Below, one piece after another: positions 10,131 through 59,171 of a DNA stretch of 64,000 bases (positions are counted from its first letter, which is position 1; each line of letters starts with the position of its first letter). Both the position numbers and the translations under genes were made by a program. This stretch comes from Podarcis melisellensis. Lineage: Eukaryota. Location: NCBI GenBank assembly GCA_964234715.1, contig OZ174283.1; one strand, 5' to 3'. The notes under the pieces were generated by a model. That model ran no database searches. It was not told where the DNA came from and saw nothing but the letters and a program-made list of their open reading frames with translations.

Positions 10131-10816
10131 AGACTATATTAGGCCATCTGAAATCATGGTGCAGTTATGGGTTAGTTGAGATAAGGAGTATTTTCAAAAA
10201 CAAGTATTTTAAATCCTGTAACAAAATAAGCAATGAAATAGGAGGGCCATGTCCACAATTTTTCAATATTTACAATTAAGAAATATAGATAATTGCTTAA
10301 TGACAAAATATTGCCCATTGTGGGATGCTACAGATGTGGAAAACCTGGTAAAGCAGGAGATCAAAGTTACTGAGTAAAGGGCATGGACTTTCTATGAGCT
10401 GTGAGGTTTCTGCTACTGCACATCAAACTAAATGGGAAGAAAACCTGAACTGTGAGATTACAGCTGTCAGTGGAGGTGGCACACTGTCCCACAGCAAACT
10501 TTTAGTACTACTCTTAAATAATGTTTTGTAAATTTCTATTTTGTTGGCACTTGGACTAGGCTAAACCAAATATATCCAGGGGCAAATAATAAATGTTGGG
10601 AATATGATACATCAAATGCCAATATGCTCCCTATGTTTCAGTAATACTGCAAAATAAAGATTTTCCGGACAAATATATTGAATGAATGGTGCATTTTATA
10701 TTGTTGTACCTGCCCTGGGACCTTCAGGTGAAAGGCAGGTAGGAAACATAATGACAATAATGGTTGGGGCACATATTAGACAGTCATCTTGGAAAATTCC
10801 AAAATGCAATGATATA

Positions 10817-11057
10817 CAGTGGTACCTCGGTTTACGAACTTAATCCGTTCCGGAAGTCCGTTCTTAAACCAAAACCATTCTTAAACTGAGGTGTGCTTTC
10901 CCTAATGAGGCCTCCCACCACCGGTGCCCTTCCACCATTCGGATTCCATTCTTACACCAAGGTAAAGTTCTCAAACCAAGACACTATTTTCGGTTTTGCG
11001 GAGTTTGTAAACCAAATCGTTCTTAAACTGGACTTTTCTTAAACCGAGGTACCACTG
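10817..11057. mobile_element. Tc1/mariner (Tigger-type) MITE, family B
   Basis: TIRs cagtggtacctcggttta / taaaccgaggtaccactg; TA TSD. Confidence 0.9.
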
Positions 11058-11103
11058 TACCAGGCAAACAATATGCAGAAGGGAATTAAACTGAATCACA
11101 TTT

Positions 11104-11122: not shown

Positions 11123-12162
11123 ATCATTAAAACAGTCTCCTATGGGACTTAAAGTGACAGGTGCAGAGAAAGGGCATTATTTAAGTCATTCCTCTGCCAC
11201 GGTGCTAATTCCCTGATTCATGGGAACTTTCCAAGATTTGGGCAATGGATGTGACTATTTGTTGTGCATGACCCCCTTATTTCCCTTCTTTGCAGGGACA
11301 TCACTTTTCCAAGCTAAGGATGTGTGAGAAGCCTCACAAGAGGTGCACTGCTTCACTGTCACGAGTGGGATGGCGACACTGGCAGAACCAGCACTCACAC
11401 ACACCCACACCCCATTGCAGGTTTCCCATGCACTGCATCGCAACACCTGAAGAATGCTTTAACCTCCCGCCATTTCAGATTGAGAATCCATCCACCATTA
11501 AACTCAACATAGCATCCAGATTAATGTTTTAAACTCTTCTCTATCATTTTCCTTCTCTCCCCCTCTGCGCTTACCGTTACTACAGGCAAATTCATCTGAC
11601 AATCCTTCCTCCTCCATAAATAAGGAGTTGAGAGAATAAAGAGCTCATCTTGGAAGGTCTTGGCAGACACCGCCAACCGGGAAAGCCCTTGCTATGGGTA
11701 AGGTGGTGAGAGTGGGTATGCAACTCAGTGGCATTTCTGGAGCCTTTGCTGTTGCTTGAGGCTCAGCTGGCCTTGGTGGCCTGGAGCACCTTCCATCAGC
11801 TTTAGCTGCTGACTGAGCTGTGTCCCTATCTGGACAGAGATAGCCCAACTACTGTCTCCAATGCACTGGTAATCTCTTCAGATTAAGGGACGCGGGTGGC
11901 GCTGTGGTCTAAACCACTGAGCCTCTTGGGCTTGCTGATCAAAAGGTTGGTGGTTCGAATCCCCGCAACGGGGTGAGCTCCCGTTGCTCAGTCCCAGCTG
12001 CTGCCAACCTAGCAGTTCCAAAGCACGACAAAGTGCAAGTAGATAAATAGGTACTGCTCCGGCGGGAAGGTAAACGGCGTTTCCGTGCGCTGCTCTGGTT
12101 CGCCAGAAGCGGCTCAGTCCTGCTAGCCACATGACCTGGAAAGCTGTCTGTGGACAAACGCC

Positions 12163-13076
12163 CTGAAAAGGATAAACCAAGAACTCTGGCCACAAGTTTC
12201 AATGTAAGGATTAACTACTACTCAAGAGTTGAAAAGAAAAAAACGTATATATTCTGCAAAGAATGACAGTTTAGAGCTAATAGTAAATTTAAACGCAACG
12301 TGTGAGTACAATAGTTTTAAGATAATAAATTTAGATATAACGTTTAAGTGCCGAAATAATGTAGTTTCAAATGTGCAATAATATAGTATAAAGGTACATA
12401 AAATACCAGTACACAGCAATAGTTTTATACAAGTCTCAATGGTAGTCAAAAAGTGTCCATATTATATATACTCAGAATAAAGAATAAAGAGCCAAAAAGG
12501 AGTATCCGGAGTATGAATCAGATGTACGACTATACTCTAGAATGTATATACTTTATTATATTTATGATCTATGGAATTGAAGAACCTCGATTTATTTTGA
12601 CATATTATTTGATATTACCAGCTGAAGAAGGCGTTTACTCCGAAACAGGGCCCTGTCCTGGTCACCACTACTGAGTCGTACATCTGATTCATACTCCGGA
12701 TACTCCTTTTTGGCTCTTTATTCTTTATTCTGAGTATATATAATATGGACACTTTTTGACTACCATTGAGACTTGTATAAAACTATTGCTGTGTACTGGT
12801 ATTTTATGTACCTTTATACTATATTATTGCACATTTGAAACTACATTATTTCGGCACTTAAACGTTATATCTAAATTTATTATTATCTTAAAACTATTGT
12901 ACTCACACGTTGCGTTTAAATTTACTATTAGCTCTAAACTGTCATTCTTTGCAGAATATATACGTTTTTTTCTTTTCAACTCTTGAGTAGTAGTTAATCC
13001 TTACATTGAAACTTGTGGCCAGAGTTCTTGGTTTATCCTTTTCAGTGCATTTTCCACAAGAACTCCAATTTCTTTA
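12163..13076 (+). mobile_element. Non-autonomous Penelope-like element: inverted pseudo-LTR arms, hammerhead-containing spacer and 31-nt tail
   Basis: Arms 12163-12531 and 12674-13045 are reverse complements (one 3-nt indel seen); tail 13046-13076; 14-bp TSD tgtggacaaacgcc at 12149-12162 and 13077-13090; hammerhead in the spacer. Family assignment is by architecture. Confidence 0.75.
12617..12662 (+). ncRNA. Type I hammerhead ribozyme (minimal, palindromic stem III)
   Basis: ACCAG-CUGAAGA-AGGCGUUUACUCC-GAA-ACAGGG-CCCUGU-C-CUGGU: stem I ACCAG/CUGGU, core CUGAnGA and GAAA, stem II GG.G/C.CC, stem III ACAGGG/CCCUGU; predicted GUC cleavage after 12657. Confidence 0.8.
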
Positions 13077-13673
13077 TGTGGACAAACGCCGGCACCCTCT
13101 GCCTGTAAAGCGAGATGAGCGCCGCAACCCGAGTCCTCTGCGACTGGATTTAACCAACAGGGGTCCTTTACCTTTTAATCTCTTATATTACTGCAATGCA
13201 TTATATGTAAGGCTGCCTTTGAAGATGGTTCTGAAACTACAGCTGGTGCAGAATTCAGTGGCCAGCTGAATTTTGGTGTAGAGCAGGAAAGAGAGACTTT
13301 GAAACTCAACAGTGCACAGATGATGAACATGTTACTGCAGAATTCAGCAGCCAGGCTGCTCATCAGGGAAAGATGGTTTGAGCACATTACACTGATTCTG
13401 GTCTGACTGCACTGGCTGCCAGTTTCCAGTCCCAATTCAAAATACTGGTTTTGACCTATAAAGACTTAAATGGTTCAGGACCACAATACTTTTAAGGGTC
13501 ACCTCTATCCAAATGAACGGACCCAGGCCTTGAGATCCTCATTTGAGGTCCTTCTTCATTAGCCTACTCACTGAAGAACCAAGAGAGACTGTTTCACCAT
13601 AGGAAGACACATGAATTCCTAAGAGGTTACCAGGCATGTATTAGTATCACTTGATTTACTAATACATCGCTTT

Positions 13674-18800: not shown

Positions 18801-21800
18801 AACTGGGCCCTGCAGCACACCAGAAGCCATGGCAGGATCAGCAATAGTTTAGTTTAATATATTCCTGGGGACCCACCTCAAATGGGTAGCTAAATTTTAT
18901 GCTACTGAAGATTCCACCAATCTTAAAGGGCAGTCTCAATAGAGGATATTAGGCAATCTGAAAAGCAACAAGGCGGCAGAAAAGGCACCATCAAATGTTC
19001 TCCTGGTGCTCAGCAGCTTCGACACTTTCTGTTAGCTCCTACTTAGCTTCCCAAGAAGGAAAGTGTGACTCTCTACAGTCCCCCAGGGCCAAGGCTACAA
19101 CTCAGTAGCAGATCACATGCTTTAAATGTGACAACTGTATGCAAGTCTTGGCATCTCTGGTTAAAATGGAGGGCTGGAAAAGAGTCTCTCTGCCCTAAAT
19201 CCTTGAAGGGGACTGTGCTGCAAGTCACAGTAGACCAGAATCTCTCAATCTTGGGTCCCTAGATATTGTTGGACTAAAACTCCCATCATTCCTAGCCAGT
19301 CAAGGATGATGATTGTCACTCAAGAACATCTGGGGAGCCAAGGCTGAGAAACAATGCAGTAGACAATAACAAACTGGATGGACCAGTCCTCGGGACTCAA
19401 ATGTTCAGTGGGAAAGAAGTTACCAGAGAATCAAAGTCCCAAGGCACAGCGGAAAACTTACTTGAAGTGATCCTGCAAGGAAACATTGAAGTCAAACGCA
19501 TCTCCCCGGTCTCCAAAGCCAATGCCAATGAAAGCGCTTCGCCCTGACAAGGGAGGTGGAGAAACCAGTCAGCAGAAGGGATGAGGACAAAGGTTCAGAC
19601 CACTCATCCTTGCTACTAGACTGTCTTGGGAGAATGAGGGGGCACAGGCTGCCTTTTGCTATGTTGTCCTTTCAATGGGATCCCTTTTATCATGCCTCAA
19701 TTTACAGCCTTAATATATTATGCCAGAGAATTTCAACACAGACAAATTTGAGGGTTCTCCATGTAGCAAGGAATTGACATCTGTACAAATATAAGAGGGA
19801 CACCTAGCTTGCCAGTACTACATGTGAGAAGAATCTAGAGGGTCTTAGTAGACCACAAGCATAATGCATCAAAAGTGTGATGGAGCAGCAAAAAAAGCTA
19901 ATGCTATTCTAGGCTGCATCAACAGAAGTATAGTGTCCAGATCAAGGGAGGTCACAGTCCCACTCTTTTCTGCCTTGGTCAAACCACAACTGGAATACTG
20001 TGTCCAGTTTTGGGCTCCACAATTTAAGAAGGATATTGACAAGCTAAAACGTTTGCAGAGGAGGGTGACCAAGATGATTGGGGGTCTTATGAAGAACGGA
20101 TGAGGGAGCTGGGCATTGTAAGAGGAGATTGAGAGGCGATATGATACCCATCTTCAAATGTCTAAATATCTAAATGTCTGTCACATGGAAGATGCAGCAT
20201 GCTTGTTTTCTCCTGCTCTGGAGGGGAGGACCCGAACCAACGGCTTCAAGTTAAAAGAAAGGAGATTCTGACCAAACACCAGGAATAATTTTCTGATGTT
20301 AAGAGCTCTTTGACAGTGGAATGGACTCCCTCAGAAGGTTGCAGACTCTCCTTCTTTGGAGGTTTTAAAGCAGAATTTGGGTGATTGTCTGTTATGGATG
20401 CTTTAGCTGAGATTCCTGCATTGCAGGGGGTTGGACTAGATGACTCTTGGAGATCCCTTCCAACTCTACAATTCTATGATTGTAAGAATAGTCATTTTGG
20501 ATCATGCTTCCTAGGTGGCAACAGAACAGAAGGGAGCCTTAGGCCTAGGTTTGTTGGGCCCTATACAGTAGCTCAGGACTTGCCAACCTGGTGCCCTCCA
20601 GATACTATTGGAGCATAACTCCTAAAAGCTCCAGTCAATGGTCAGGGTGATGTAGAACTGTTGTAGGAGGGCATCAGATTGTTGTGCTCCTACTCCCAAG
20701 AACTACTTCATCATTCAGCCACACCACAGTTCAATTAAGGAGTAATAAACCCTTAATTCTCTCACCATTCCCATCCTGAATCCGGATGACAAAGTACCGA
20801 CTGGAATCAGTCACAGTCTCCACAGCAATGCCAGGATATTGATCTATTGGAGCCTGAGCAAAAAGCTCCCCTAAGGATACAGAAGAAGAGACCACTTTCA
20901 AGACCCAGACAGATTTATCACTACAAGCAAACTAGGGACACTATATTCTTTGGTCAAAGGAACAACCAACTTATTCAGCATCAAACACCATGAAGCAGTC
21001 TTTATCATTTTCATAAAAATCAAAGAGTACAACACAGTAAATTGCTGCATTGTCAGTCACACAGTATCTGAAGACTTCCAAACATTTTGAGTTTGCTTGC
21101 AATTCATAATCTATCCAACACCAGTGACACTAGCTTTTACTGCTAAACCTTAGCTCACAAATTAGATATTGCAAATAAATTTTAATTCTGCTCAGTGTGT
21201 GCATTTCAGTAAGCCCATTTACTAATAGTCTTCTAGTACCATGGGTTCACCATTTCCTTGGTTAATATACTATATTTTTCCATGTATAACACGCCCCCAT
21301 GTATAAGACGACCGCTATTTTTAGGAGCCTAAAATGAGGAAATAAAAAAATTAAGTTGTTGAGCTATTTTTGGCAAATTGCAAAAACAGTTGTTGAGCTG
21401 AACTATTGAGCTGTAAAAACAACCTCCAATTTATCACTAAACTTTTTCAGAAAAAAGGGTCTTATACATGGAAAAATACGGTACTTCACTCCCAAAATGA
21501 TTATGAAAATCAACACATGTAGCTTTTGCTTAAGTCAGAGCTTTAATGCTTGCAGTATCTCATTTTCAAGAAACAATTCCTGGCATGCCTGAACGGGTGC
21601 GGTACCTTGATGTTCATCAAAAATCTGCACACAATAAAAAACGTTACATATTTGAGAAAAATGCTACATTCTCTGCCACCTTGAATTACAACATGGATTC
21701 TAATGGCATCTTCCTCAACTCTGATTAAACATGAGTAACGAAGTGATAAAGGTAAAGGGACCCCTGACCATTAGGTCCAGTCGTGACCGACTCTGGGGTT

Positions 21801-24800
21801 GCGGCACTCATCTCGCTTTACTGGCCAAGGGAGGCGGTGTACAGCTTCCGGATCATGTGGCCAGCAGGACTAAGCCGCTTCTGGCGAACCAGAGCAGCGC
21901 ACTGAAATGGTGTTTACCTTCCCGCCAGAGCGGTACCTATTTATCTACTTGCACTTTGACGTGCTTTCAAACTGCTAGGTTGGCAGGAGCAGGGACAGAG
22001 CAACGGGAGCTCAATCCGTCGCGGGGATTCGAACCGCCGACCTTCTGATCGGCAGGCCCTGGGCTCAGTGGTTTAGACCACAGCGCCAATTGTGCATAAA
22101 AACTGTGTCGAGATATGGATGTTAATGACTGATCTTGCTTTTGGGTGACAGTCAAGTAAGTTTTCCTCAGAGCAGACCAACTGAAATTAATAAACCCAGC
22201 TTAGCCATGTGGATTCATGTTAATGGGTCCACTCTGAGTTAGACTGAGTTGACTATCACTTAGCCTGTAGCTGATCATCATCTCTGTTTGTTTCGCCTGA
22301 CATCTGTTTTGGTTACAATTGTAACATGCCCAAGTGTGCACACTGCAATCATAACTAGCACAGCTAAGGATACAAAAGCCCCATGGATCATCTAAACCAA
22401 CATACGACAGAGGGCTTAACACCACAGGTTGGGCGTGGAGAACCCTTGGCTCTCCAGGTGTTGCTGAACTACAATTCTCATCTGACCTGGCTACTGGCCA
22501 GGCTAAGGCTTGCCAAGGCGGATGGATCTTGTAGATCAGCGTTTTTGGAGGGGTCAAAGGTTCCCCAACACTGCCACAGAGGCTGGGGGAAAAAATACAA
22601 CAGAACAGAGTGATAAGCAGCAACAAAATTTTAGGGCAGAAAATTTTCATAAGACAAAGCTAACTCCTCCAAGGAGAAGGGAACATGTTTTGATGAAAAC
22701 ACACTATCAGTAATATCGCCTTCCCGTATGTAATTCTGTCTAACGTACGCATTATTGCAAAGCAATCACCCCCCCTTGAATAAACTTTAGCCAATGAATG
22801 CATTCCTATGTATACTTTACCCTGGTATATGCATTTTTGTACACATTACTTGACTAGAAACCTTCTCTGCAAAATTTGGAGAAGTGCAAGCAGCAACCAC
22901 AGAGCCGTTATGTATTGACAGACTTTTCCATAGATTTAGTATGTAGGCAAACCTCCCCACACTAATCATGTGGCAAGTTGACCGTCTGTATTCCCCACAA
23001 CATCTTTAAGAGCAGAACTAATCGGAAGCAACACCAAGTGAGGCACTACATAAAAAACCATGCAGGGCAATATCACCTATAGGAGTGAAGACAAAGGAAA
23101 ATGACGCTGAACTGGATATGTACATACTGACAGAAATTAAGCGGAGCAGTCTCATGACAGAGAAGTCCGAGAAGTATTTGAACCCACCCCAACCAGAGCA
23201 CAGAACCTGGGCAACCACGACTTCAGGACTACATAATGCCCACCCTGTGATTTCCTCACCTGAAACTTTGTCCTCTAGTTTTATATATGCAACTTTGCCT
23301 TTAGAGGTAATGCGGAGGCGTCCTGTCCAGTCCGGCTGGTCCAGTTTCCAGTCAGAAGCCCTGCAGGGTAAACAAACAGGGAGAAATTCGCTGAGAAGAA
23401 ACCCCCTCCAGCCACCCACGCCCTGTGGGCTTCCCCTGCTGATTTCACCACAATCCTGGGTCACGGCAGATTTAGCTTAACCTCCCTTGCGGCCAAGGGC
23501 ACAAGCAGCACTTTTATCTTTAGATGCTCCAGGACAGAATGCGGCCACAGAGTATCCCACCTTGTTCCTTCACCATCAATATTATCCACCCTGCTTCTCA
23601 GCCTGCTGCTGAACAGAATTCATAATTAGGATGAAAGCTATTATGATTGTTGTTATTGTTTTGAGGCTACTCTTATTTCAATAGGAACTAACTGCACCAT
23701 CACCAACACAACGTTTATACAGGAACTAAAAGCTACGTGTAGCACTTTTGGAAAAGGAGACTGACCTTGCCTGCTCAAAGTGGAATGTAGACAAAAACAA
23801 AGAAGGGGAAGCACCTTGTGGAAAGATGATACTATCATAAGGACATAGGAAGAGCCAGCAAAGCCAACAAGCGGGATTTGAGCACAAGAGGAGTCCTCTC
23901 CCCTGCAGTGGTTTCCAGCAACTGGGACTCAGAATCATTGCTGCCTCCAACTGTAGAGGCAGAGCAGAGCCATCCTGGCCAGGAGCCAGAGACAGCCCAC
24001 TCCTTCATCCTCTTTTAAAGCCACCCAAGCTAGTGGCAGTGACTGCCTTCTGTGGGAGCGAGTGCCATAGTTTAACTATGCGCTATGTGAAGAAGTATCA
24101 CAAGAAAGTGTTGCGAGTAACCTCAGATCCCCACTCAGCGGCTGACCTTGGGCCAGGCTAGCATCTCTCTGGCTAATCCAACTCACTGATATTTATCTGT
24201 GGGACCACCATGACTCACACGACCCCAACACCTGCTGAGATCAAAGGTGGCCATACAACACGTTCTATCTATAGAGAAAAGGTGGTGGAGGTCCCGTATG
24301 GGGTCCATCTGTATAGAGACATCAATTATGTGGAATTCCTGTAGGCTCACCCTTCTAGATCTGAGGTATTAAGAGCATATTGGCATGCTTTGATGTTTTA
24401 TTGGTATTTTGATCATGAGCTACTTGGGTTCGGCTGTACGTTTTAACAATGTAGTGGTGCCGCTGTGGTCTAAACCACTGGGCCTCTTGGGCTTGCCAAT
24501 CAGAGGGTTGGAGGTTTGAATCTGCTTTACAGTGGTGAGCTCCCAATTGCTCTATCCCAGCTTCTGCCAACCTAGCAGTTCGAAAGCATGCCAGTACAAG
24601 TAGATAAATAGGTACTGCTGCGGTAGGAAGATAAACGGCATTTCTGTGCACTCTGGCTTCTGTGACAGTGTCGCGTTGCGCCAGAAGTGGTTTAGTCATG
24701 CTGGCCACATGACCCAGAAAGCTGTCTGTGGACAAACACCAGATCCTTCGGCCTGAAGCGAGATGAGCACCACATGACATAGTCACCTTTGAATGGATTT

Positions 24801-27800
24801 AACCATCCAAGGGGTCCTTTACCTTTTACCTACCTACATTTTAACAGTATTTTTTTCCACACAATGAGGTCAATATGCCCCAGAGACAAATCTACAGAGA
24901 ATCCGAAGTTGTTGTTGTTGTTTAAACTACCCCACCCATCTGGCTGGGTTTCCCCAGCCACTCTGGGCAGCTCCCAACAGAATATTAAAAACATGATAAA
25001 ATATCAAATATTAAAAACTTCCCTAAGCATGTGAGACAGTGTGAAACAGTCTCTTCACAGATACAACTGTGGCCTTCCCAGAAAGAGTTCTCTGAATACA
25101 CACTTTCAAACCACTTCCAGGAGTCTGTGACATCTGAAAAGGAACTGAGCCACCCATCAGACTCATCTTAAACAGTCAGTCCTCAAAAGCATTGAAAAAA
25201 TGCTCAACTGCTGAGCTGACCTTTGAAAAGCTTTCAAATCTAACAAGGTTCTTCTGTAGGCAACAGCTTTCAAAAAAGAAATATCAGCTAGCATATTCTC
25301 CTGTGTGACCAGGCAGGATTCCCTATCATCTGGATGCTCAGGGTTTCCTGAGGAGGTTGTGAAATTGGCTCAGTAGGCAGATGCAGACTTCAAAACTTTT
25401 ACAAGCCATGGCCAGATTTGCTCCACTAAAAGTTTACTACATGTCCTTGGCCATGGCTTGTAAAAGTTTTGGAGCAAATCTGTATGGTGAAGAAATGCAA
25501 AAGTTTCCAAGGAATCTGAAACCATGGGTGGATTTTCCTCGTGCTTGGGGGGCAGAGGGGTGGAACTTTTTGGAAATAGCGCAAATGTGCAATTCTCACT
25601 TTCTTGAAAACTCAACTTTCTTTACTAATAATGAAAATGTATATAACCTGGAATTTAGAATTGAGTATTTGATATATCTATGAGATTTAAAATCAGTAAT
25701 ACATTTGTGTGTGTGTGTGTCCCAATTTTTATTTTTATTTTACAAATATATCAGTGTTAGAGATGGGATCCTAAAGGGTGTCTGAGTTTTAGACCACTAG
25801 AAAGGCAGGGACTGTGGGTAGGAGCAGGGATGATGTTTGAAAGTGATACCAACCAAAATGTAATCAACTAAACAATGTTTTATTTTGAAGTGTGATCCAG
25901 TCATTGAAATGTTTTCATTGCTTTTCATTTAGTGGATATTTAGTATTTGTATTTTAACTTATTGAACACTGCTTTGGTAGGTTTTGACTGTGAAGCTGTT
26001 TATAAAATAAGTACTGGGGCTCAGAAACAGAACACTGACCTCTCCAGTTTTGTGCAGAAAAAGAGTACTGTATATTGAAAGAAAAGGCCCAGGAAATAAA
26101 CGCACCTATAATGTAATTAAGAAGTAGCACAAGTTATTGTGAGCCAGCGTCATTGAAATAACTGGGAATTGCATGTAAGAGTAAGTGCAGAGTGGGTAAC
26201 AGAACAGACAGTTAGCTATCCTGGCCCCAAATGGCGCTGTGGGTAAAAGCCTCAGCACCTAGGACTTGCCAATCGCATGGTCGGCGGTTTGAATCCCTGC
26301 AGCGGGGTGCGCTCCCATCGCTCGGCCCCAGCACCTGCCAACCTAGCAGTTCGAAAGCACCCCAGGTGCAAGTAGATAAATAGGGACTGCTTTATAGCAG
26401 GAAGGTAAATGGCGTTCCGTGTGTTGTGTTGGCTCACCAGATGCAGCTTGTCACACTGGCCACGTGACCCGGAAGTGTCTGCGGACAGCGCTGGCTCCCG
26501 GCCTATAGAGTGAGATGAGCACACAACCCTAGAGGGGCAGGGGTACGGGCAGGGGTACCTTTACCTTTTTACTATATCAGTAAATGGCATATCCTTGAGA
26601 ATACTACTAACATGACTTACTTTTATTTTTCCCCCAGTTACCCTGGAGGATTCACAGTTCCTGATTCTGAACTTCTACTATGGGATTCATTCCAGAGGCA
26701 TTTCAGCCCTGAATTTGGGGAGATGCAGAGCCTAATGGAAGCCACGCTAATGGAAATCAATGACTCCTCTGATTGCTCTGTTCCTTGAACAAGTAACTGG
26801 GCTCCAAACCATTTTAAACTAACAGCGTGTGCCTACGCAGGGAGATGTCAGCAGAAAAACAAGTGTAATTTCTTAGCAGTTATCCACATTCCCTTCCTCT
26901 CTGCTCATCTAACCAGCGTGGTCAGCGCTGATGCACAATCTGGAAGATAATCCAGCTCCCTTTGTGACTGTTAGTGACGAGAGGAAAAGGGGAAGAGTGG
27001 ATTTGTCACTAATGAGAACCGGGATAGGATGACTCAGAGAACACACGTACTGCAAAAGAACAGAGAGGGGGGAAGAGGGAAGAGAAGGGAAGAGAGGATT
27101 ACAGAAGAAAATGATGTTCCAGAAGCCAACACCAGCAGAAATCCACCTGTGCAGCTAAACACTGAACAGTGGAGCAGCAAGTCTGAGGAAGCGACGCTCT
27201 CCATTTTAACACCCCTGTGGGAATGACACACACAGAGACCCAGCAGATGTCACACAACTCCCTTTTGCGCTCCTACAAGGGGGGGAAATGTAACAGAGGA
27301 AAGGTTGCCTGTCAGATGATGGCTGGTGAACAGAGGCTCCCAAATGAGGGGCAAACCAAGGAAAATCCATGCAGCAGAGCTTCTCCTGAAATGGGAAGAA
27401 TTCAACCCCAGGGGTTCAGCCGCAAAGATCTACGACAGGCCTTTCAATTTAAAAACATTAATAACAATGTGTTTGTCTGCTTTTAATGTTTACTGATTTT
27501 ACGGGTCTTTAAAAAATATAAATGCATTTATATAAATGCACACGATTTTAATGTCAGCCTCTCTGGTGTCATTAAAAGAATGAGTTAAGCCTCATTTAAA
27601 AGCAGGGCGTGTAAAGTGTGGGACGCGGGCAGAGGAACAAAAAAGGCCGCTCCATCTCCAAGGGAGGCGGAGGCGGAGTCCCAAGGACAGCAGGTGCCGG
27701 CGAGAAGAAATGGATCACGACCGCCTTACATAAGAGGCTCCCCCAGAAGTTGCATTGGGTCGCCATTTACTCCCTGAGTAAACGGACCAGGGCCACTTAG

Positions 27801-35710: not shown

Positions 35711-37117
35711 ATGCCTCCATTCATGGCTAATGAGAGTTTCTACGAATCTGAGGACTCCTTCACGTTACAACATATGGATTCCGTGTCTATTGGATCTCTG
35801 CTCATCTTCTCCATCACCTTTCTCCTGGGCCTCCCCGGAAATGGCTTGGTAATCTGGGTCCTTGCTCTGAAAATGAAGCGAACGGTGAACACGGTTTGGT
35901 TTCTGCACCTTGCCGTGGCTGACTTTGTGTGCTGCCTGTCCCTGCCTTTCTCCATTGTCCACCTGGTGCTGCATCAGCAGTGGCCTTTCGGGTGGTTTTT
36001 CTGCAAGATTATCCCGTCTGCCATCATCTTCAACATGTTTGCCAGTGTCTTCCTCCTCACCACCATCAGCATCGACAGGTGTCTTGTGGTGATGAAGCCT
36101 GTCTGGTGTCAGAATCACCGGACAGTAAGGTTCGCATCCGTGGTCTGTGGTGTTACCTGGTTCCTAGCTTTCATTATGTGTTTTCCTGCTTTCTTCTATC
36201 GCGAAATCTCCATTGATGAATCGGGCAATGCCAGGTGTGTCTACAATTGGCACAGTGAGGAATATGAGGAAGGATGGCCAGATTATTTGTTTCCCAGCAA
36301 CGAAGAGTTTTCTAGTCAGCGTCCTACCTTTGTGGCTAGTAGCTATGAAGATATTTTCACAGACGGAATTTTGGATGTGTATTCTGAGTACCATATTCTT
36401 AATACAGACAAAAGCAAGGCTTGGTATTCCAGCACACCAAGCACTCTTGGCACTAATAGAGATACAGATTCATTGACGGTGGAAGTCACCAGCCCAAAAT
36501 ACGTGTCACACGAATCTTCCCACCCAGCTACTGCCATATCCAATGTTATTTATTCCGATCTTCCCGACTATTTTCTTTTGGGCAATTACTCTGGCAACCT
36601 CCCGATTAGCAATGACTCAATGGCAATGCCCTTTTATGATGAGCTGCCAAGCGTTCTTGTGTCCATTACTGTCACCCGAAGCATCTTTGGTTTTCTCCTC
36701 CCCTTCGGAATCATGGCTGCCTGCTACGTCCTTATTGCCCTCAAGATGCTCAGAAACCAATTTGCAAAGTCCCGTGTGAAGGCTTTGCGGGTGATCCTGC
36801 TTGTGATAGTCACTTTCTTTCTCTGTTGGGCTCCTTATCATGTCATTGGGGTGCTGTATCTCCTGGCTAACCCCAGCACAGCACTTTATGAAACACTGGC
36901 TTTGTGGAACCATGTTTCCACAGCATTGGCCTATGCCAACAGCTGCATCAACCCACTTCTTTATGTGTTTGTGGGGAAAAAATTCAGGGAGAAAGCACGC
37001 CAGACGGTGCAAGGGATTTTGGAAGGGGCGTTCAGTGAGGAAGGAATATGCTCCACTGCCTTCTCCCAGGAAAGAAGCAAGTCTACAGTTGACCATATTG
37101 ATGTTTCCGCCCTCTAA
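35711..37117 (+). CDS. C3AR1: Complement C3a anaphylatoxin receptor (468-aa class A GPCR, single coding exon)
   Basis: 7 TM segments, LGLPGNGLV, DRC motif, PVWCQNHR, NPLLY; very large (~150 aa) second extracellular loop diagnostic of C3aR; acceptor ttttaaag| 3 nt before the ATG; lies between NECAP1 and FOXJ2. Confidence 0.96.
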   Translation: MPPFMANESFYESEDSFTLQHMDSVSIGSLLIFSITFLLGLPGNGLVIWVLALKMKRTVNTVWFLHLAVADFVCCLSLPFSIVHLVLHQQWPFGWFFCKIIPSAIIFNMFASVFLLTTISIDRCLVVMKPVWCQNHRTVRFASVVCGVTWFLAFIMCFPAFFYREISIDESGNARCVYNWHSEEYEEGWPDYLFPSNEEFSSQRPTFVASSYEDIFTDGILDVYSEYHILNTDKSKAWYSSTPSTLGTNRDTDSLTVEVTSPKYVSHESSHPATAISNVIYSDLPDYFLLGNYSGNLPISNDSMAMPFYDELPSVLVSITVTRSIFGFLLPFGIMAACYVLIALKMLRNQFAKSRVKALRVILLVIVTFFLCWAPYHVIGVLYLLANPSTALYETLALWNHVSTALAYANSCINPLLYVFVGKKFREKARQTVQGILEGAFSEEGICSTAFSQERSKSTVDHIDVSAL

Positions 37118-47800: not shown

Positions 47801-50800
47801 GTAATGGCAGTTGCCAACATTGCAGCATGTGTTTGCTACCATCTTTGCATTGCTCAGATATACTCTGAGCACTGAACATTCAGAATTTTTGGCGATGGTA
47901 CAGGCACCTCAAACACCTCAAACTACACTCTTCTGTTCCCCCCCCCCCTGCATACTAAGGGATCAGGCAAAACAGATCAAGGTTAGGGAAAATCTGAGAG
48001 ACGGAGACCGGATGTGACAAAAACATATGCTTTGTTGAACCTTTTATCCCCATCCCTAGAAACGATGCCACGTGAGGGGGTGTGGCTACACCTCTTTGAT
48101 TCCGCCTCACCTACTGTCCTGGCATGGCAGGTCCCCACCCAGAAAGCCCTGCTGAGTACCTTGGTTCATGGGCTGCTCTTGTTTGCCACTATTCATGGCA
48201 CAGGACTCGGAGATTCGGGGAAGCTGCTGTGGGCCTCCCAGATGAGGGAGCTGACCGGTCTGGGTGAGAAAGTGATTGAGGGAGTCACAGAGGTTGGCAA
48301 TGTGATGCTGATCTAGGGTCCAGTTCTTACGCTCAGCCTGGCGCAGACTCTCCATCAACTCTGCAGGGGCCAGAGAAAGAGAGAGGTAAGAAACTAGGCG
48401 TCACTGTTCTCTACTCTTGCCAAAGAGATCCTTCTCTATATCTCTACTTCCCACTCTAAGCCTTTGAAGGGCCCCTTTCCCCCTCTACCAGAGTGAAGGG
48501 TGTAAGGAAATAACATAACATGACCCACCTGAGAACTGGGAGTGCTCAATGCTAGACCAGTTCAGCCGATTCACCATCTTGAAACTTTCTTTTAGGGAAT
48601 CTATGTTGGAGCACCACTCAGGGGGAAATGCTGAAAAATGGGGGACACAAAATAGTCAACAGGGTGTACCCCCATACCTTATATTAGACACCAAATACAT
48701 GCCTAATACATTTATCTCTAAAATCCTGAACTGAACAACCTACCTCCTCATGACAACGTAACTCTTCTCTGTACCCAGCCACTCCACTCCCTGTTTTATT
48801 CATTAATTCATTCAAAGCTTTCCAAGCTCCTTTTATCATCAATAATGGCTTACAAAAATTGAAGCTAATAAAATAATAGATATAAACACAAACACCCAGC
48901 AGCTAAAAGCAAAATTTAAAGCCATCTAGTCTAGGGAACCACCCACTAACAGTGCCTCAGTCTTATCTGGATTGAGTTTCAGTTTGTTGCCTCCCATCCT
49001 GTCCATTATCAAGGCAAGACACTGGTCCAGCACTTCCACTGCCTCACGTTCAAATGTAAAGGAGAAATAGAGCCCAGTGTCATCAGCATACTGCTGACAA
49101 GGTACTCCAAACCTGTGGATAACCCCACCCAGTGCTTTCATGTAGATGTTAAACAACATGGGGGATAGGAGTGAGCCATGCAGGACCCCACATTGAAGGT
49201 TCCACATGGCTGAAAAACATTCCCCAAGCAACACCCTCTGGGAATGACCATACAAGTAGGACTGGAACCACCGCAAAGCGGTGCCACCCACACCTAGTTC
49301 AGACAGTTGCTCCAGGATACCATGGTTGATGGTATCAAAAGCCATTGAGAGGTCGAGAAGAATTGACAGGGACACGTTTCCAAAGCCGTTTCTGTGCCTA
49401 AACCCCAACTGAAATGGATCTGGAAAATCAGTTTCTTCCAAAAGTGCCTGGGTATGGTCTGCGACCACTAGCTACAGAACCTTGCTCAGGAAAAGGAGAT
49501 TAGCAACTGCTGTAGTGAGTTAGGTTTTCCAAATCCAGGGAATTTTTCTTCTGGGCTGCCCTCCCCCCGCCACCCCAAACTTCTGAGGGAGTGGAACTAG
49601 CAAGAAGGCCCCACTGCTTATCTTAACACCTGAGAGGATCTGAAGGGAAGAAGATAGTTTCAGAAATTTGGGGCTCATGTTGTTAAGGGCTTTAAACGCT
49701 AACGTAAGCACCCTGAATTGAACCCAGAAACTATCTGGCAACCAATGCAGCTGTTTTAAAACAGGGATTATATTGGAGTTCTAAATGGAACCCCAGCTGC
49801 ATTTGGATCAATTGAAGTTTTCGAGTTGTATTCAAGGGCAGCCCTATGGAGAGTGAATTGCAACAATCCAGTCCATAAGTTACTGTGTACTGTGACCATA
49901 TCATCTCTGTCCAAAAGGGCCTCAGCTAGATATAGGCACTCCTAGTCAAAACCACCTGAGCCTACAGTGATAGTGTTGGACCTTGGAGTAAACCCAAGGC
50001 CCAGTGCAGGGTACAATCAAGAGAGCCGCAGTCAGTTCTGACTTCCTGCACAATGCAGGCCTGCACAAGTGTGTTTTTCCACATTCACACTTGACTATCT
50101 TTGGTGCACAGCTAAAAATGTAAACTGTGATGTGGCCCTTCATGATTTGCTCAGAAGGAACGTGCCAAAAGCTCCTCAACTCCAAAATTTCAGCCTTGCC
50201 TAGTCCATCTGTCCTTCATTCAATGAATATTTCTGTCAGTTTGCCCACTCTGTAACTCACCAAAGCTAGCATTATTCATGGAAGCTTGTGATTGCTGCTG
50301 CTGCTGTTGCTGTTGTTGTTGTTGCTGCTGCTGCTGCTGCTGTGAATGGGAGTGCGGGTGGTGGTGCTGATGCTGGTGATATCCTCCATGCTGCATTGAA
50401 GAGGGGTGAATGGACATCACAGGTGGGGGGCCATAGCTGTCACCTCCTTGCTGCTTGCCACCCTGGGATGGACAGCCTTCTGAGGTTGGAGTGTGGAGGG
50501 GGGGTGCAGCTCCCACCGAGGAGGGCACCTGCTGCTGGTGGTACATATAGTAATTGTGGTTGGAGGGCTGCATGTCACCCAGGAGGGAAGAGAAATCTGA
50601 AGGGAGGATTAAGAGGAAAGTATTAAAATGGGTGGCGGGCCCTTTTTAGCCTGGAGGGCCACATTCACCTGTGCCCAGCCCTCCAGGGGCCACTATGGCC
50701 ACTCACTCTCTTATCAGGTACATGCACTTATGCATACACACACAAGACACACACAAGCATATTATGGCCCTCCTTCTGATGACTGGCAGAGGGGGCAGTG

Positions 50801-53800: not shown

Positions 53801-56800
53801 CCAAAACGGAAAACCCTTTCGTCTAGCGGGTTTTCCGTCTTGCGAGGCGTTCGTCTTGCGGGGCACCACTGTATTGAACGAACCTCAGAAACCTCATGTG
53901 AAATAAACACATGAACTTTCCAATTAAGTACATTTTATGTGATTAGCTATAAGTTTTAATTGATTAATTAACTGATCTATCAATTAAATCTGCATACGGG
54001 TTAAAACAGTGTTTCTACAGCACAAAGCACTTTCTTTGTTCTGTGTGTTGTGGCACTCGTCACGGTCCTCCATGCCCCAGTAGAGGTTTAGTCGTGCTGG
54101 CCAGATGACCCAGAAAGCTGTCTGCAGGCAAACACCACTCCCTCAAACTGAAAAGTGAGATGAGCGCCACACCCCACAGTCGTCTTTGAATGGACTTAAC
54201 TGTCCAGCGTTCTTGGACAGGCATCATCCTAGAAGAGGCATCCCCCACACCCACTGAACGCAAAAAAAGATGGAATGCTTCTTTTAAGCACTTGTACTAA
54301 AAATAATATTTATAAAAAAATAAATTGCTGTACAATTAATTGCAGCATCTTTTTGGGTGATTAAAAGTTTTTTAATTAACTAATTTAACCCTTTAATTTA
54401 ATGTATTACTGCGTATTTACTCTAGAGCCAGTCTCACTCTGTTTAGTGGGGTTTACTCCAAGGCATGTGTGCACAAGAATGCAAGCAAAACATTGCAGCC
54501 CTACTGAATGATTTAATAAATCTATGCTGTTTTTGGAGCAATATAGCTAATACAGTTATTAATCATTAGGTTAGTAATTTAAAAGAACAAAATTAAAGTC
54601 ATTTAAATTAAGCACGTGTGTATAATTTATTATGTATTTTGCTATTTAAATAATAATAATTCTGATTCTGCTAATAATGGAGCAGGCTGAGGAAGAAAGG
54701 GCAAAGGGGGTGAGGCGCTCAAGCCTTTCCCTCCTTTGGCTGCTGCAAATCTTATGCAATTCTTCTCTATTTCCAAATCTCAGCAGACATTGCTCATGCA
54801 CTGACAAACATTGCTTCAAGCCCATAAAGGCTACAAACTTGCTTTTAAAAAAACATGAAAGTGAAGGCTCGCAGAAGCCTGAGTTTTATGACCAATGCAT
54901 TACTTCTGAGCCATGTAGGATCATGCCCTTTGGAAAAAGTGGATCTCTTAATCATCTCACAAATGCTTTGGATTTTGAGGGTAGGAATGGGGAGCCCCAC
55001 TCACATCGTCATCTGGTGGGTGACGCCTCTTCCGGGAAATATCAGGACAGGTATCTATGGTCCAGTAAGAACCCTGCAAAGAGTAAGATATGCTGGTGAA
55101 AGGAGTATAAAACCAACCCTTGATATCAGCGATAGCAACAGCAGCAGTGCAACCCATAATACCAAAGAGCATGCAGGTTGCCACAGCTTATCAATTACTC
55201 TTGCAGCACAAGACAGGTCCTTTCTTTACATTGCAACATCATTGCAACATCATCCTTGATACTTTTTTGTGATGTCTCAATCTCAATACTCCTTCAGTCT
55301 CCAATAAACTCTTGGGAAGAACAGGTTGGACAAGAACAGCAATTCTGATGTAAAAGTATGAAAAAGAAGGACCAGGGCAGAAATCCAGTAAAATCTAAAA
55401 AAAGGTGATGTTTTGCTCCTGTTGCAGCATAGTTCTGGGGTCATGCGCACACATGTTACAGTCTGGGATACAAAGGCCCACTGCTTTCTCTTAGCTTTCC
55501 CAAATGTGCACACACCGAAGAAGTCAGAGCTATTTCATCCACAGTAGAGTTTATTACTTATTACTATTACTGAGAGATACAGAAGAACAAAACCTGAATG
55601 TTCTTTCCTTGCTTCTTCAGCAGAGCAGCAAATACCTATGCCCTACTTTTACACAAACCTTTGCTCTAGCCTGGAGTAGGAGCAGCAGAATTTTCAACTT
55701 GCCTGCATATTTTATGTCCTCACTTAATCTGTTCATTCACATTAGTCCAATTTCTGCCAAGAGCAGGAGTGGGGGTTTAGAAGTCAATGCAACATTGGTT
55801 TAAAAAACACCTCCCCACCACGATGGTCAAATGTCTAGCTTGATCCCTCTCACCTTTCCAGGGTCGTCCCGAGGGCGAGGCACTTTCCGAAAGCATTTGT
55901 TCAGAGACAGATTGTGACGAATGGAGTTCTAGGGAGGAAAAAAATGACACAGCTAACAGGCAGGCTGCTCACCCATGCCCTTATCACCTCCCTAGCGCAA
56001 ATGCTGCTGCTTTCCCCTCAGCCAGAGTTCCCAGGCACAGCTATGGTGGTGGTTGTTGTTTTGCCACATCGAGAGGGGGGAGCAGGAGATGGAGTACTGG
56101 GTGGGAAGGGAAGGATGTGGCAGGCAAGAACAGTGAGGGCTAAGCAGCCTCTTTCCACCTACCACACCTGCCCTGGAAGTCATCCCACCTGTGGTATTTT
56201 GGAGAAGCAGCAGCCAAGCTTCCAACCCCAAAGAGCAGTTCCAATCTCCCCACCAGGATGCAGATTTGCATCTCTTACCTACACAATGGGAAATCCAGAA
56301 CCGAGAAAAGGCAAGGTCTTCTCTTAGAACCAATGTTCTACTCCAGGGATGGGGAACCGTAGGCCCAGAAGATGGAGGCACATGTGACTGAAGAAACCCT
56401 TAGATTTTGTGTTCCTAGAAAGTAGCCTGCTGTGCATTTCTCTGCCCAATTCTTCCTCTGGCCCTGCACATCCCTGGCAAGTGGCCTCTAGAAGGTCCCC
56501 CATGAAGGAACTGAGTAAAGTGCAGAAGGTTCCCCCACCACAGCTCCTCAGACAAAGGTTACAGCACAGACTGCCTCACCGAACCCCGAAAAGCTAAATT
56601 TCTCCTTTACTCTGCAGGAAGAATTAAGGCTGCATGAAACACATGTGACTAATCTGCAGCACATAGTGGTAGTTATGGCGTGTACCTCCACCTACCTCTA
56701 GCATGGTGAAATGCCATGGACTGCATATTTGCTATGGCCAATCGCAGGCTCTGATTTAGCCTGTGGCACAAGCCCCAACCAAGAAGGCTGGCTACCACTG

Positions 56801-57605
56801 GCACAGAAGAGAGCCTCTGACTCGAAATAGGAATCTGTAGCTCATATTCCAGATTATTATTACCCTCTTTATCTGCACTGAACTAGAAACTATATTTATA
56901 TATGTACTTATTGCTGATGTTTTTACTGTTGACTGCTTCAGGATGTTTCATGGGAAGAAATTAATAAATGAAATCAATGTTATCTATTTTAAAGATACAG
57001 AATGGACTTCAAGCGTATAGAAGAGGCATGGAGAAGCTGAAGACTGAAACACTCATATGGGAAAGTTTCACCTCCCCTCTGGTCAAAATTTAGAATGTAA
57101 GTGCCTTGAGGCGGAGATTTGTTTTTGTGTTACATTGAGTCTGTAAAACACCACGCACATTCATGGCGTGATCATACAATATAACATTAAATGGGAATGG
57201 ATTTTCATAGGAGCAGAAGCTGGAACTTCTGCTCCCATGAATGAACTTCTGAGAATGCCCAAGTCTACTTACCTTCCACCCAATGCCAGCATTCTTATAG
57301 TAGGGAAAGTTGTCACAAATCCAGCGATAGATCTCACTGAGGGTCATCTTCTTGGCCGGGGATGAATTGATAGCGTAAGTGATCAGAGTGGCATAGCTGT
57401 AGCGCGGCTTCCCATCCTGGTGGACTGCAGCATCATCTTTGCTCAAGGTGGCATTGGGGTCAGTGGGGGAGCCAGGAGAGCACTTCCGACCGGCCCCTGG
57501 GGGACCTGACTGGGAGGCACCCCCTAATTTCTCAATAGTGGCTCGCAGAGTGAGCTGTGGGAGCCAATCAATGGAAGTGAGGCTGCTTTCCAGATCAGAG
57601 GCCAT
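44741..57605 (-). CDS. FOXJ2: Forkhead box protein J2 (544 aa, 10 coding exons; non-coding first exon not located)
   Basis: Exons 57273-57605, 55854-55928, 55005-55073, 53140-53280, 52688-52886, 50261-50596, 48529-48630, 48160-48360, 46393-46491 and 44741-44820 sum to 1635 nt in frame; [15 protein letters not shown], forkhead [26 protein letters not shown]-terminal [13 protein letters not shown]. Confidence 0.97.
45956..46172. mobile_element. Tc1/mariner (Tigger-type) MITE, family D
   Basis: TIRs cagtggaccctc / aagtgtccactg, TA at the right end; internal palindromic ccggaagtatacacttccgg. Confidence 0.75.
46393..46491 (-). CDS. FOXJ2: FOXJ2 coding exon 9
   Basis: gctag|[33 protein letters not shown]|gtaagg. 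Confidence 0.92.
48160..48360 (-). CDS. FOXJ2: FOXJ2 coding exon 8
   Basis: tgcag|[41 protein letters not shown]|gtactc. Confidence 0.92.
48529..48630 (-). CDS. FOXJ2: FOXJ2 coding exon 7
   Basis: ttcag|[34 protein letters not shown]|gtgggt. Confidence 0.93.
48920..49510 (-). mobile_element. L2/CR1-group LINE reverse transcriptase fragment
   Basis: [37 protein letters not shown] and [12 protein letters not shown] motifs. Confidence 0.9.
49600..49900 (-). mobile_element. Separate L2-type LINE 3' fragment
   Basis: [13 protein letters not shown] and [23 protein letters not shown] remnants. Confidence 0.65.
50261..50596 (-). CDS. FOXJ2: FOXJ2 coding exon 6 (Pro/Gln/His-rich, polyQ)
   Basis: ttcag|[27 protein letters not shown](Q)[11 protein letters not shown]|gtgagt. 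Confidence 0.93.
51222..51709. mobile_element. hAT-superfamily MITE
   Basis: TIRs taggcctgggcgat / atcgcccaacccta; perfect 8-bp TSD ctctggag (51214-51221, 51710-51717). Confidence 0.85.
52400..52617 (+). mobile_element. CR1 3'-end fragment
   Basis: aacatcaggaagaactttctgacagt..ggttggactagatga..attctatgattcta tail. Confidence 0.85.
52688..52886 (-). CDS. FOXJ2: FOXJ2 coding exon 5
   Basis: ttcag|(Q)[40 protein letters not shown]|gtgagt; CAGCAG tandem acceptor. Confidence 0.93.
53140..53280 (-). CDS. FOXJ2: FOXJ2 coding exon 4
   Basis: tccag|[23 protein letters not shown]|gtgagt. Confidence 0.92.
53530..53871. mobile_element. Tc1/mariner (Tigger-type) MITE, family E, with internal tandem repeats
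   Basis: TIRs cagtggcgcctcgcaagacgaa / ttcgtcttgcggggcaccactg; TA TSD. Confidence 0.88.
54050..54210 (+). mobile_element. Sauria SINE 3' fragment
   Basis: gtttagtcgtgctggcca.atgacccagaaagctgtctg..gagatgagcgcc matches the other copies. Confidence 0.75.
55005..55073 (-). CDS. FOXJ2: FOXJ2 coding exon 3
   Basis: tgcag|[23 protein letters not shown]|gtgagt. Confidence 0.95.
55854..55928 (-). CDS. FOXJ2: FOXJ2 coding exon 2 (forkhead helix 3/wing)
   Basis: cctag|[25 protein letters not shown]|gtgaga. Confidence 0.96.
57273..57605 (-). CDS. FOXJ2: FOXJ2 first coding exon
   Basis: ATG at 57605, acceptor ~57629; [64 protein letters not shown]|gtaagt. Confidence 0.97.
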
Positions 57606-59171
57606 GATGCTGGAGGCAAAAGTGTCTACTGTGGAGAAAGAAAGAGATACAGATAGATGGGGCTCTTGAAATATGATCACATTATATGTTTTTACTCTCC
57701 TACAAGGAAAAAAACCTCAGTATGGCCAAACAAAAGCTGCATCACCAATAGCTCAGTTTCCAAAGCCACAGACATTACTGCATTTGCTTAGTTACGTGTA
57801 AGAACTACTGTATATAGGTCAGGAACAAAGATGACAACTTTCTGAGCCAGACTTAAGAGAAGTTAGAACAGGCTTGTATAAAAGTCACTCTTTTCCTTAC
57901 CTATGGAGAGTAAGTTCCTCTCCAGGCAAGAAGAAAGGGAAGTGCTAAAGAAGTTGAACCACAAATTATTGCAACATGCAGGTGAGCACAGGTAAGCTCA
58001 AAGAAGTTTGTGTGGGTTAGTTACAATGCATCATAGTCACTTGCCCATATTTGGACATTTAAATTGTATTTCTCAGTGATGTTCTGGATACAGGCGGCAA
58101 CCATTTTACATGGGGGTTCCGTTCCTAGCCCCCACGTGCATCAGTGCAGAACACATAAGCCCCCACCCCACCCCATTAAACCACTGCCCCCATTCCACCC
58201 TCTTTTGGGTCCAAAAGGACCCATGCGTCAACTGGACATGCAAAATGGTCACTGCCTGTAAGTATTGTTTTGTTCTGATGCATATCATGACTGCTTTGTT
58301 TTACAATTAAAAAGAAGGGGGGAAATACTCCCACCACTCTTATTACAGAGCTTCTGACATGAGAGGAGTGAAATATGCCTTGAAAGGTTAAGCCACCATG
58401 TGCACAAGTCCCATGAAATGAGCAGCAGCTACACAAGAGCATTGCCTGCTAGATTCTACCTCATGAGCTGCATCTGTCTGGCTCTCGTTAAAATCTACTG
58501 CTTGAGGCAGGGATAGCACTCGCCCAAAGATTCTGAGATCAACTCTGCAACCTGTGCTATTACCCAGCTAATTTGGGGGAAGGGCACCTCGATGAACGAA
58601 AAGGGATAGCTCTGTAACAACACTTCTCTCCAGTACAGAACTTTCATATACATTTAAAAGACTGGCAGCTAACAAGCTCAGCTAACAGATTAATTAATAA
58701 GCAGACAAGTAGTGGCTGAATGACCACCTGGAGGGGAAGGTTTAGTTCCCCTTGCAGGTTATTTCTCTTGTGAGCAGTCCAGCTGAGGCAAGGAAACACC
58801 CATCAGCAAATGAACGTAACAATTAGTTGTTTCTTTTTTTTAAAAAAACCAGGTATTTTAGGATGACAGGGAGCAGTTGCCCCAATCCAAACATGTATGC
58901 ACTCAATGTATTCTACACCACTACTTTCACAACACAAAATGAGCCTATCTGGTCTTGGAGGACTTACACAAGTGTTCAACAGTACTTGTTCCATTACGCT
59001 CTCAAACGTGTATGCATCTGCTAGCTTAGACCCGCTTGTCACACTCATAACATTTAACGGTATTTCACATATGTTTTATCAGTCTTTACAACAACCTTAG
59101 AATGGTGGGCTGGTGCTACTGCCTCTGTATATATAGTATATATAGTGAAAACACTGGTCAATTTGACAGTA

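Follow-up and report, generated by a model that had tools for sequence, protein, structure and literature searches.

We have identified a minimal type I hammerhead ribozyme motif of the kind carried by Penelope-like elements (PLEs) in a 64-kb window of DNA, the window being the whole stretch that was analysed. The motif comprises 46 nt (12617-12662, plus strand), and its minimal type I hammerhead topology was read directly from the letters. It is a genuine PLE-type minimal hammerhead motif, for which we infer catalysis, and it lies within a fold-back retroelement insertion of 914 bp. With a probability of about 0.8, we take the motif to be the hammerhead of a whole family, either of PLEs or of non-coding derivatives that PLE enzymes mobilise; the family would presumably be linked to a master element coding for reverse transcriptase (RT) and endonuclease. 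The hammerhead class is already known from PLEs. The ribozyme described here is another family's example of that class and an inert passenger in a fresh insertion. The parts of the motif are as follows.

12617-12621, plus strand: stem I, 5' strand ACCAG, with five of five Watson-Crick pairs to 12658-12662
12622-12628, plus strand: core C3-A9, CUGAAGA, at the sole descriptor match in the 64-kb window
12629, plus strand: extra unpaired A between A9 and G10.1 (letters read)
12630-12641, plus strand: stem II, GGCG/CUCC with loop UUUA; G10.1-C11.1 kept, C10.3.U11.3 mismatched
12642-12644, plus strand: core G12 A13 A14, GAA (letters read)
12645-12656, plus strand: helix III, the perfect 12-nt palindrome ACAGGGCCCUGU, A15.1 to U16.1 (letters read)
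12657, plus strand: C17, with predicted cleavage between 12657 and 12658 (position from hammerhead numbering)
12658-12662, plus strand: stem I, 3' strand CUGGU (letters read)

The general hammerhead core is complete, with CUGAAGA, GAA, A12645/U12656 and C12657 at H17, and three helices can be formed. Stem I has 5 bp, and its extension is blocked where U12616 stands opposite C12663. The pairs of stem II follow in the order G-C (G12630-C12641), G-C, C.U mismatch (C12632/U12639) and G-C, and this stem is thermodynamically marginal. Helix III can be either 4 bp with a loop or a 12-bp duplex. The first-pass annotation had described the core nucleotides, the 5-bp stem I, the single C/U mismatch in stem II and the 12-nt palindrome, and the letters match this description. 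Its classification as a minimal type I hammerhead with a predicted cut after C12657 is borne out by the letters and the hammerhead numbering, and the extra A12629 was absent from its account. De la Pena and Flores are said to have described in 2001 an extra A between A9 and G10.1 in the plus-strand hammerhead of CChMVd, reportedly an active natural ribozyme. The CChMVd hammerhead is a viroid type III ribozyme with loop-loop contacts, and its context is unrelated to that of the motif described here.

According to PMC4209133, PLE hammerheads are characterised by a base between positions 9 and 10.1, by the G10.1-C11.1 pair and by a palindromic 15.2-16.2 segment with loop 3. All three hallmarks are present in the motif, as A12629, G12630-C12641 and the palindromic 12645-12656, respectively. 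The insertion that carries the motif is composed of the following parts.

12163-13076, plus strand: the whole fold-back retroelement insertion, 914 bp, made of a 3'-terminal PLE-type part and an inverted copy
12163-12531, minus strand: left arm, an inverted copy that is truncated at its 5' end and lacks both tail and ribozyme (369/372 identity)
12532-12673, plus strand: unique centre of 142 nt with the ribozyme, a hairpin loop if transcribed
12674-13045, plus strand: right arm, the sense copy of the element's 3' region (from arm comparison)
13046-13076, plus strand: tail of 31 nt, at the right end only (from arm comparison)
12149-12162: left copy of the target-site duplication, TGTGGACAAACGCC, 14 bp (from repeat comparison)
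13077-13090: right copy of the target-site duplication, 14 bp (from repeat comparison)

The left arm is identical to the reverse complement of 12674-13045 at 369 of 372 positions, and the sole difference is a 3-nt TAA indel. Of the element itself, the locus contains only the 3'-terminal 545 nt (12532-13076), flanked on the 5' side by the inverted partial copy of 369 nt; the ribozyme is located 419 nt before the 3' end of the element. Deletion of the insertion and of one copy of the duplication restores a host repeat, and four further copies of this repeat in the window run through the junction unbroken; the insertion boundaries are therefore real. PLE insertions show strong 5' truncation, an inverted 5'-truncated copy beside the 5' end and an optional tail of 30-40 bp at one end (PMC8557442). 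The same architecture is found here in the 5' truncation, the adjacent inverted partial copy, the one-sided tail and the target duplication. The earlier proposal of a link between this ribozyme and PLEs is thus supported, both by the target duplication, the fold-back arms and the one-sided 31-nt tail, and by the three PLE-hammerhead hallmarks (PMC4209133). At this locus the element inserted very recently into a repeat of SINE-like type, and the copy was dead on arrival.

The host SINE-like repeat occupies 11861-12162 and 13077-13260 and is interrupted by the insertion. Other SINE-like copies are located at 21748-22088 (minus strand), 24456-24828, 26232-26532 and 54077-54200; they are 75-83% alike and continuous through the insertion point. 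ARAGORN found no tRNA in the host SINE-like copy. We presume that the host repeat is a tRNA-derived squamate SINE. When the element was compared with the 64-kb window by blastn, the only match was that between its own inverted arms.

The family to which the element belongs was followed in public DNA reads. Contigs from one DNA run each of organism A (the likely source species) and organism C (a relative) were aligned on 12520-13095. This region is a high-copy repeat, with a word depth of thousands in A and of hundreds in C. An identical 72-nt unitig, 12620-12691, is common to A and C at depths of about 1900 and about 430, respectively. Since this unitig is identical in two species, the C.U mismatch of stem II is the state of the family and not a decay. 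An ancestral GGAG in stem II had been suggested in the first-pass annotation, and this suggestion does not hold: C12632/U12639 sits in the high-depth form of both species, where no variant reaches 10%. Within 12589-12691 no substitution or indel at 10% or more is listed, and 37 variable sites are found elsewhere. This variant-free run over the ribozyme is only suggestive of constraint, because a second stretch of about 105 nt, 12790-12894, is also free of listed substitutions. The ribozyme segment is invariant and high-copy in the read sets of the two species. Metagenome contigs scanned for family copies with a degenerate 26-base pattern gave 0 matches.

The other copies also reveal how the members of this family begin and end. 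They run on upstream of 12534 with different sequence, and thus the fold-back joint is private to the copy in the window. Their ends are found near 13049-13052 or near 13076-13078, two sites that are about 27 nt apart. The tail of PLEs has been explained by two internal reverse-transcription start sites in the anole Poseidon element (PMC11167929), and the two copy-end sites match both this explanation and the optional 30-40-bp PLE tail (PMC11167929, PMC8557442). In a second subfamily, an unrelated upstream sequence (...TCCTCAAAAAACCG) is joined at 12620, the exact 5' edge of the ribozyme, and accordingly the start of the ribozyme looks like a module boundary. This subfamily still supplies ACC(+G)AG, the stem I strand with one bulged G. 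At 12588, 12789, 12913 and 12934 the copy in the window has C, and all or nearly all contigs of organisms A and C have T; position 12588 is a CpG. Those of the four C sites that are located in the arms are identical in both arms, indicating that the C variants were inherited from the template and did not arise after the insertion. This suggests a small and young subfamily.

Predicted folding distinguishes between the monomeric and the dimeric use of the motif. In the minimum free energy (MFE) structure of the monomer (-10.1 kcal/mol), the cut site is hidden in a CAGGGC/GUCCUG hairpin, whereas the monomer hammerhead fold has -6.0 kcal/mol, which is 4 kcal/mol above the MFE, and its 4-bp helix III has a probability of 0.009 in the monomer ensemble. 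Helix III alone is predicted at -1.8 kcal/mol as a hairpin and at -24.3 kcal/mol as a duplex of two RNAs, and in the dimer ensemble the duplex has a probability of at least 0.93. For the dimer, the MFE is -35.7 kcal/mol, and the full double-hammerhead structure, at -32.7 kcal/mol, falls short of it by 3 kcal/mol; two monomers folded separately amount to -20.2 kcal/mol. In the dimer, intermolecular stem I has a probability of about 0.3 and stem II one of about 0.1; in the monomer, that of stem II is 0.015. Of the two modes that had been proposed for the motif at first, the dimer in trans agrees with these values, and the monomer is thermodynamically poor. The predicted energies thus describe a sequence suited to dimerising, with stem II as its weak point. 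If the motif cuts, we consider the dimer mode to be by far the likelier one.

In the source elements, two RNA copies, either tandem units or separate transcripts, would pair via the palindromic helix III into a 12-bp duplex. Stem I would then become intermolecular, giving a double hammerhead, and this structure would cut each strand after C17 and leave 5'-OH and 2',3'-cyclic phosphate ends. The ribozyme of the source elements most likely works as has been published for PLE hammerheads. At the locus in the window, on the other hand, cutting would need read-through transcription and a partner in trans, because the locus has a single ribozyme and nothing points to a promoter of its own. The consequence of this single locus would be small. 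A transcript of the whole insertion, if made, is predicted to fold into a double-stranded hairpin of 369 bp whose loop contains the ribozyme (-647 kcal/mol, z = -50).

It could also be argued that the motif is a shell that is conserved in the family and yet inert, with the palindrome and its surroundings serving as a site of RNA-RNA dimerisation or of PLE-protein binding, and we regard this as unlikely. The weakness of stem II and the fact that the active fold is not the MFE structure would suit such a shell, and so would the very low in vitro rates of PLE hammerheads, which cut poorly even as dimers (PMC4209133). The PAc protein of the Poseidon_Ac element has been modelled as a dimer, which would suit a dimeric RNA (PMC11167929). 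Also, cleavage ends are absent from the RNA reads, both here and for Poseidon_Ac. In two raw-read RNA runs of organism C, with 10-12 aligned reads each, the reads were mostly less than 95% alike and many continued into unlike sequence. These reads, from copies of the other species, cross 12657/12658 at a depth of 2-6 with no pile of starts or ends, a coverage too thin to decide. For Poseidon_Ac, no reads ended at the ribozyme site, and cleavage was dispensable for insertion in vitro (PMC11167929). However, all invariant core positions are intact, and the subfamily with a different upstream sequence has retained the stem I strand; a role of the palindrome alone would hardly account for this. 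Moreover, PLE hammerheads of this architecture are reported to undergo cleavage in dimeric form (Lunse et al. 2017, cited in PMC6765202). We favour the reading of the motif as the hammerhead of a PLE-type family.

The minimal type I hammerheads of metazoan PLEs (PMC4209133; Lunse et al. 2017, cited in PMC6765202) have in common with the present motif the type I topology, the intact core, the extra base and the G10.1-C11.1 pair. They also share the palindromic helix III, which implies a dimeric active form, the presence of many genomic copies and a position within non-coding terminal sequence of a PLE-type element. Their helix III is absent or has only a few nucleotides, whereas here it is a 12-nt palindrome. 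Because of this length, helix III could formally also close as a 4-bp hairpin, and the duplex between two molecules is unusually strong. The PLE motifs discussed by Cervera & De la Pena have a large helix II of about 6 bp (PMC4209133), whereas stem II here has four positions with the fixed C.U mismatch.

Among lizard PLEs, Poseidon_Ac (PAc) of Anolis carolinensis resembles the present element in several respects: its minimal hammerhead has a single additional base behind A9, the tail signature is present, and its copies end at two points (PMC11167929). On the other hand, the Poseidon_Ac consensus has the core CUGAGGA+U, a longer stem II and a helix III of only ACGU, whereas the present motif has CUGAAGA+A and the 12-nt palindrome. 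In Poseidon_Ac, the start codon of the ORF follows directly after the core, at the unit junction, and the stated cut site lies 26 nt downstream (PMC11167929); here no ATG is found at that place, and 419 nt separate the ribozyme from the 3' end. By eye, the element shows no sequence resemblance to the ends of PAc. The present family is different from the Poseidon_Ac family. In newt satellite 2 and in ASBVd, double hammerheads (Forster et al. 1988, cited in PMC4209133) likewise have an unstable monomeric helix III, and they gain activity when two copies pair into an extended helix III. They belong to tandem satellite or rolling-circle RNAs, whereas the copy here is single and dispersed, and therefore its partner would need to come in trans.

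A further interpretation sees in the element not the 3' end of a coding PLE but one unit of a non-LTR retrozyme, which is a non-autonomous relative of PLEs that occurs as tandem repeats and forms circRNA. We consider this to be quite improbable. Animal non-LTR retrozymes are non-coding, contain a type I hammerhead and are related to the terminal regions of PLEs (bioRxiv 10.64898/2026.07.22.740005), and the absence of coding capacity in the 545-nt element part and in the 30 nt known upstream would agree with such a unit. Type I hammerhead retrozymes were present in 4/5 reptiles sampled and are pLTR-related (bioRxiv 10.64898/2026.07.22.740005). In contrast, the ribozyme here is single and dispersed, the second arm is inverted and without ribozyme, and no tandem arrangement was found in the 64-kb window. 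The target duplication, the tail and the fold-back are typical of PLE insertion by target-primed reverse transcription. In addition, the reptile retrozyme consensus averages 176 bp (bioRxiv 10.64898/2026.07.22.740005), whereas the unit here has at least about 610 nt. The PLE reading and the retrozyme reading overlap, since the same source derives retrozymes from PLEs.

In terms of coding capacity, no PLE-type RT/GIY-YIG ORF was found in this copy or elsewhere in the 64-kb window. The only RT fragment of the window lies at 48926-49468 on the minus strand (RVT_1, E 2e-16) and contains ..QYADDTGLY..; it is LINE-type, not PLE-type, and unrelated to the ribozyme element. The ribozyme region was also considered as coding sequence and rejected: the upstream consensus of the other copies puts a stop in the frame of the ORF at 12453-12674, and the remaining two frames are full of stops. 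For the 76-aa ORF of the arm, Pfam gave no domain and an exact protein look-up was blank. A protein search with this ORF gave no candidate, a result that is silent on longer or shorter kin.

The level of chance was estimated with a descriptor of the motif. Its core part was CUGANGA, 0-1 extra nt, GAA and H17. Stem II was given 3-6 bp with G10.1-C11.1 and at most one mismatch, stem I at least 4 bp, and helix III A15.1...U16.1 as a palindrome or as a hairpin of at least 3 bp. On both strands of the 64-kb window the full descriptor had 1 match, 12617-12662, and it had 0 in 300 dinucleotide shuffles, a count that is indicative only, the descriptor having been devised post hoc with the motif already known. 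Rfam 15 gave no hammerhead at gathering score, and none at E<=10 on a 501-nt or a 71-nt slice; the motif stayed below the gathering thresholds of Hammerhead_1, _3, _II, HH9 and HH10. To our knowledge, the hammerhead models of Rfam are not built on PLE minimal motifs. We take the silence of Rfam as a failure of the curated models and not of the hammerhead class. The only Rfam matches were two of MIR169_2, on both strands of 12479-12726, which at 33 bits stayed below the gathering score of 50; they fall there because the region is the inner part of the fold-back hairpin, and they do not represent a microRNA gene. Chance resemblance, or an assembly artefact of the palindromic region, is highly improbable: the bare core pattern alone is insignificant (4 matches vs 1.7 expected), Rfam is silent and perfect fold-backs are prone to mis-assembly (PMC8557442), but the full descriptor is absent from all shuffles, the 72-nt segment occurs at high depth in independent read sets of two species, and the 14-bp target duplication comes with a cleanly restored host repeat.

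If the motif is the hammerhead of a PLE-type family, its helix III invites a further and speculative idea, which we put forward with considerable doubt. The helix III palindrome, grown to 12 nt in a lizard-type PLE family, might be a signal for RNA dimerisation without tandem neighbours. If this were true, the ribozyme would be a concentration-sensing switch in trans, which cuts only when the RNA of the family is abundant. The palindrome might also couple two template RNAs in a dimeric PLE protein complex, and such coupling could bear on the frequent inverted or tandem doublets of PLE insertions. PLE hammerheads are always present, are poor cutters in vitro and proved dispensable for insertion in the one system that has been reconstituted. 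Whether dimerisation in trans is enough for cleavage could conveniently be tested on a natural variant such as this recently active family, with its long palindrome and fixed stem II mismatch, and the family is equally suited for asking whether the hammerhead motif of PLEs serves cleavage at all.

Other features were observed in the window. Two 24-nt inverted repeats, 10815-10838 and 11036-11059, are 96% complementary and 197 nt apart, and may mark the two termini of a small element resembling a DNA transposon. An intact single-exon gene for a GPCR of 468 aa (Pfam 7tm_1) is located at 35711-37117 on the plus strand, and its best solved relatives are C3a anaphylatoxin receptors, with E about 1e-116. 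On the minus strand, a forkhead-domain exon (Pfam Forkhead; PDB matches) is found at 57090-57680, and an ORF with a glutamine run lies near it at 50220-50573. The C3a receptor, the forkhead exon and the glutamine-run ORF look together like the vertebrate FOXJ2/C3AR1 neighbourhood.
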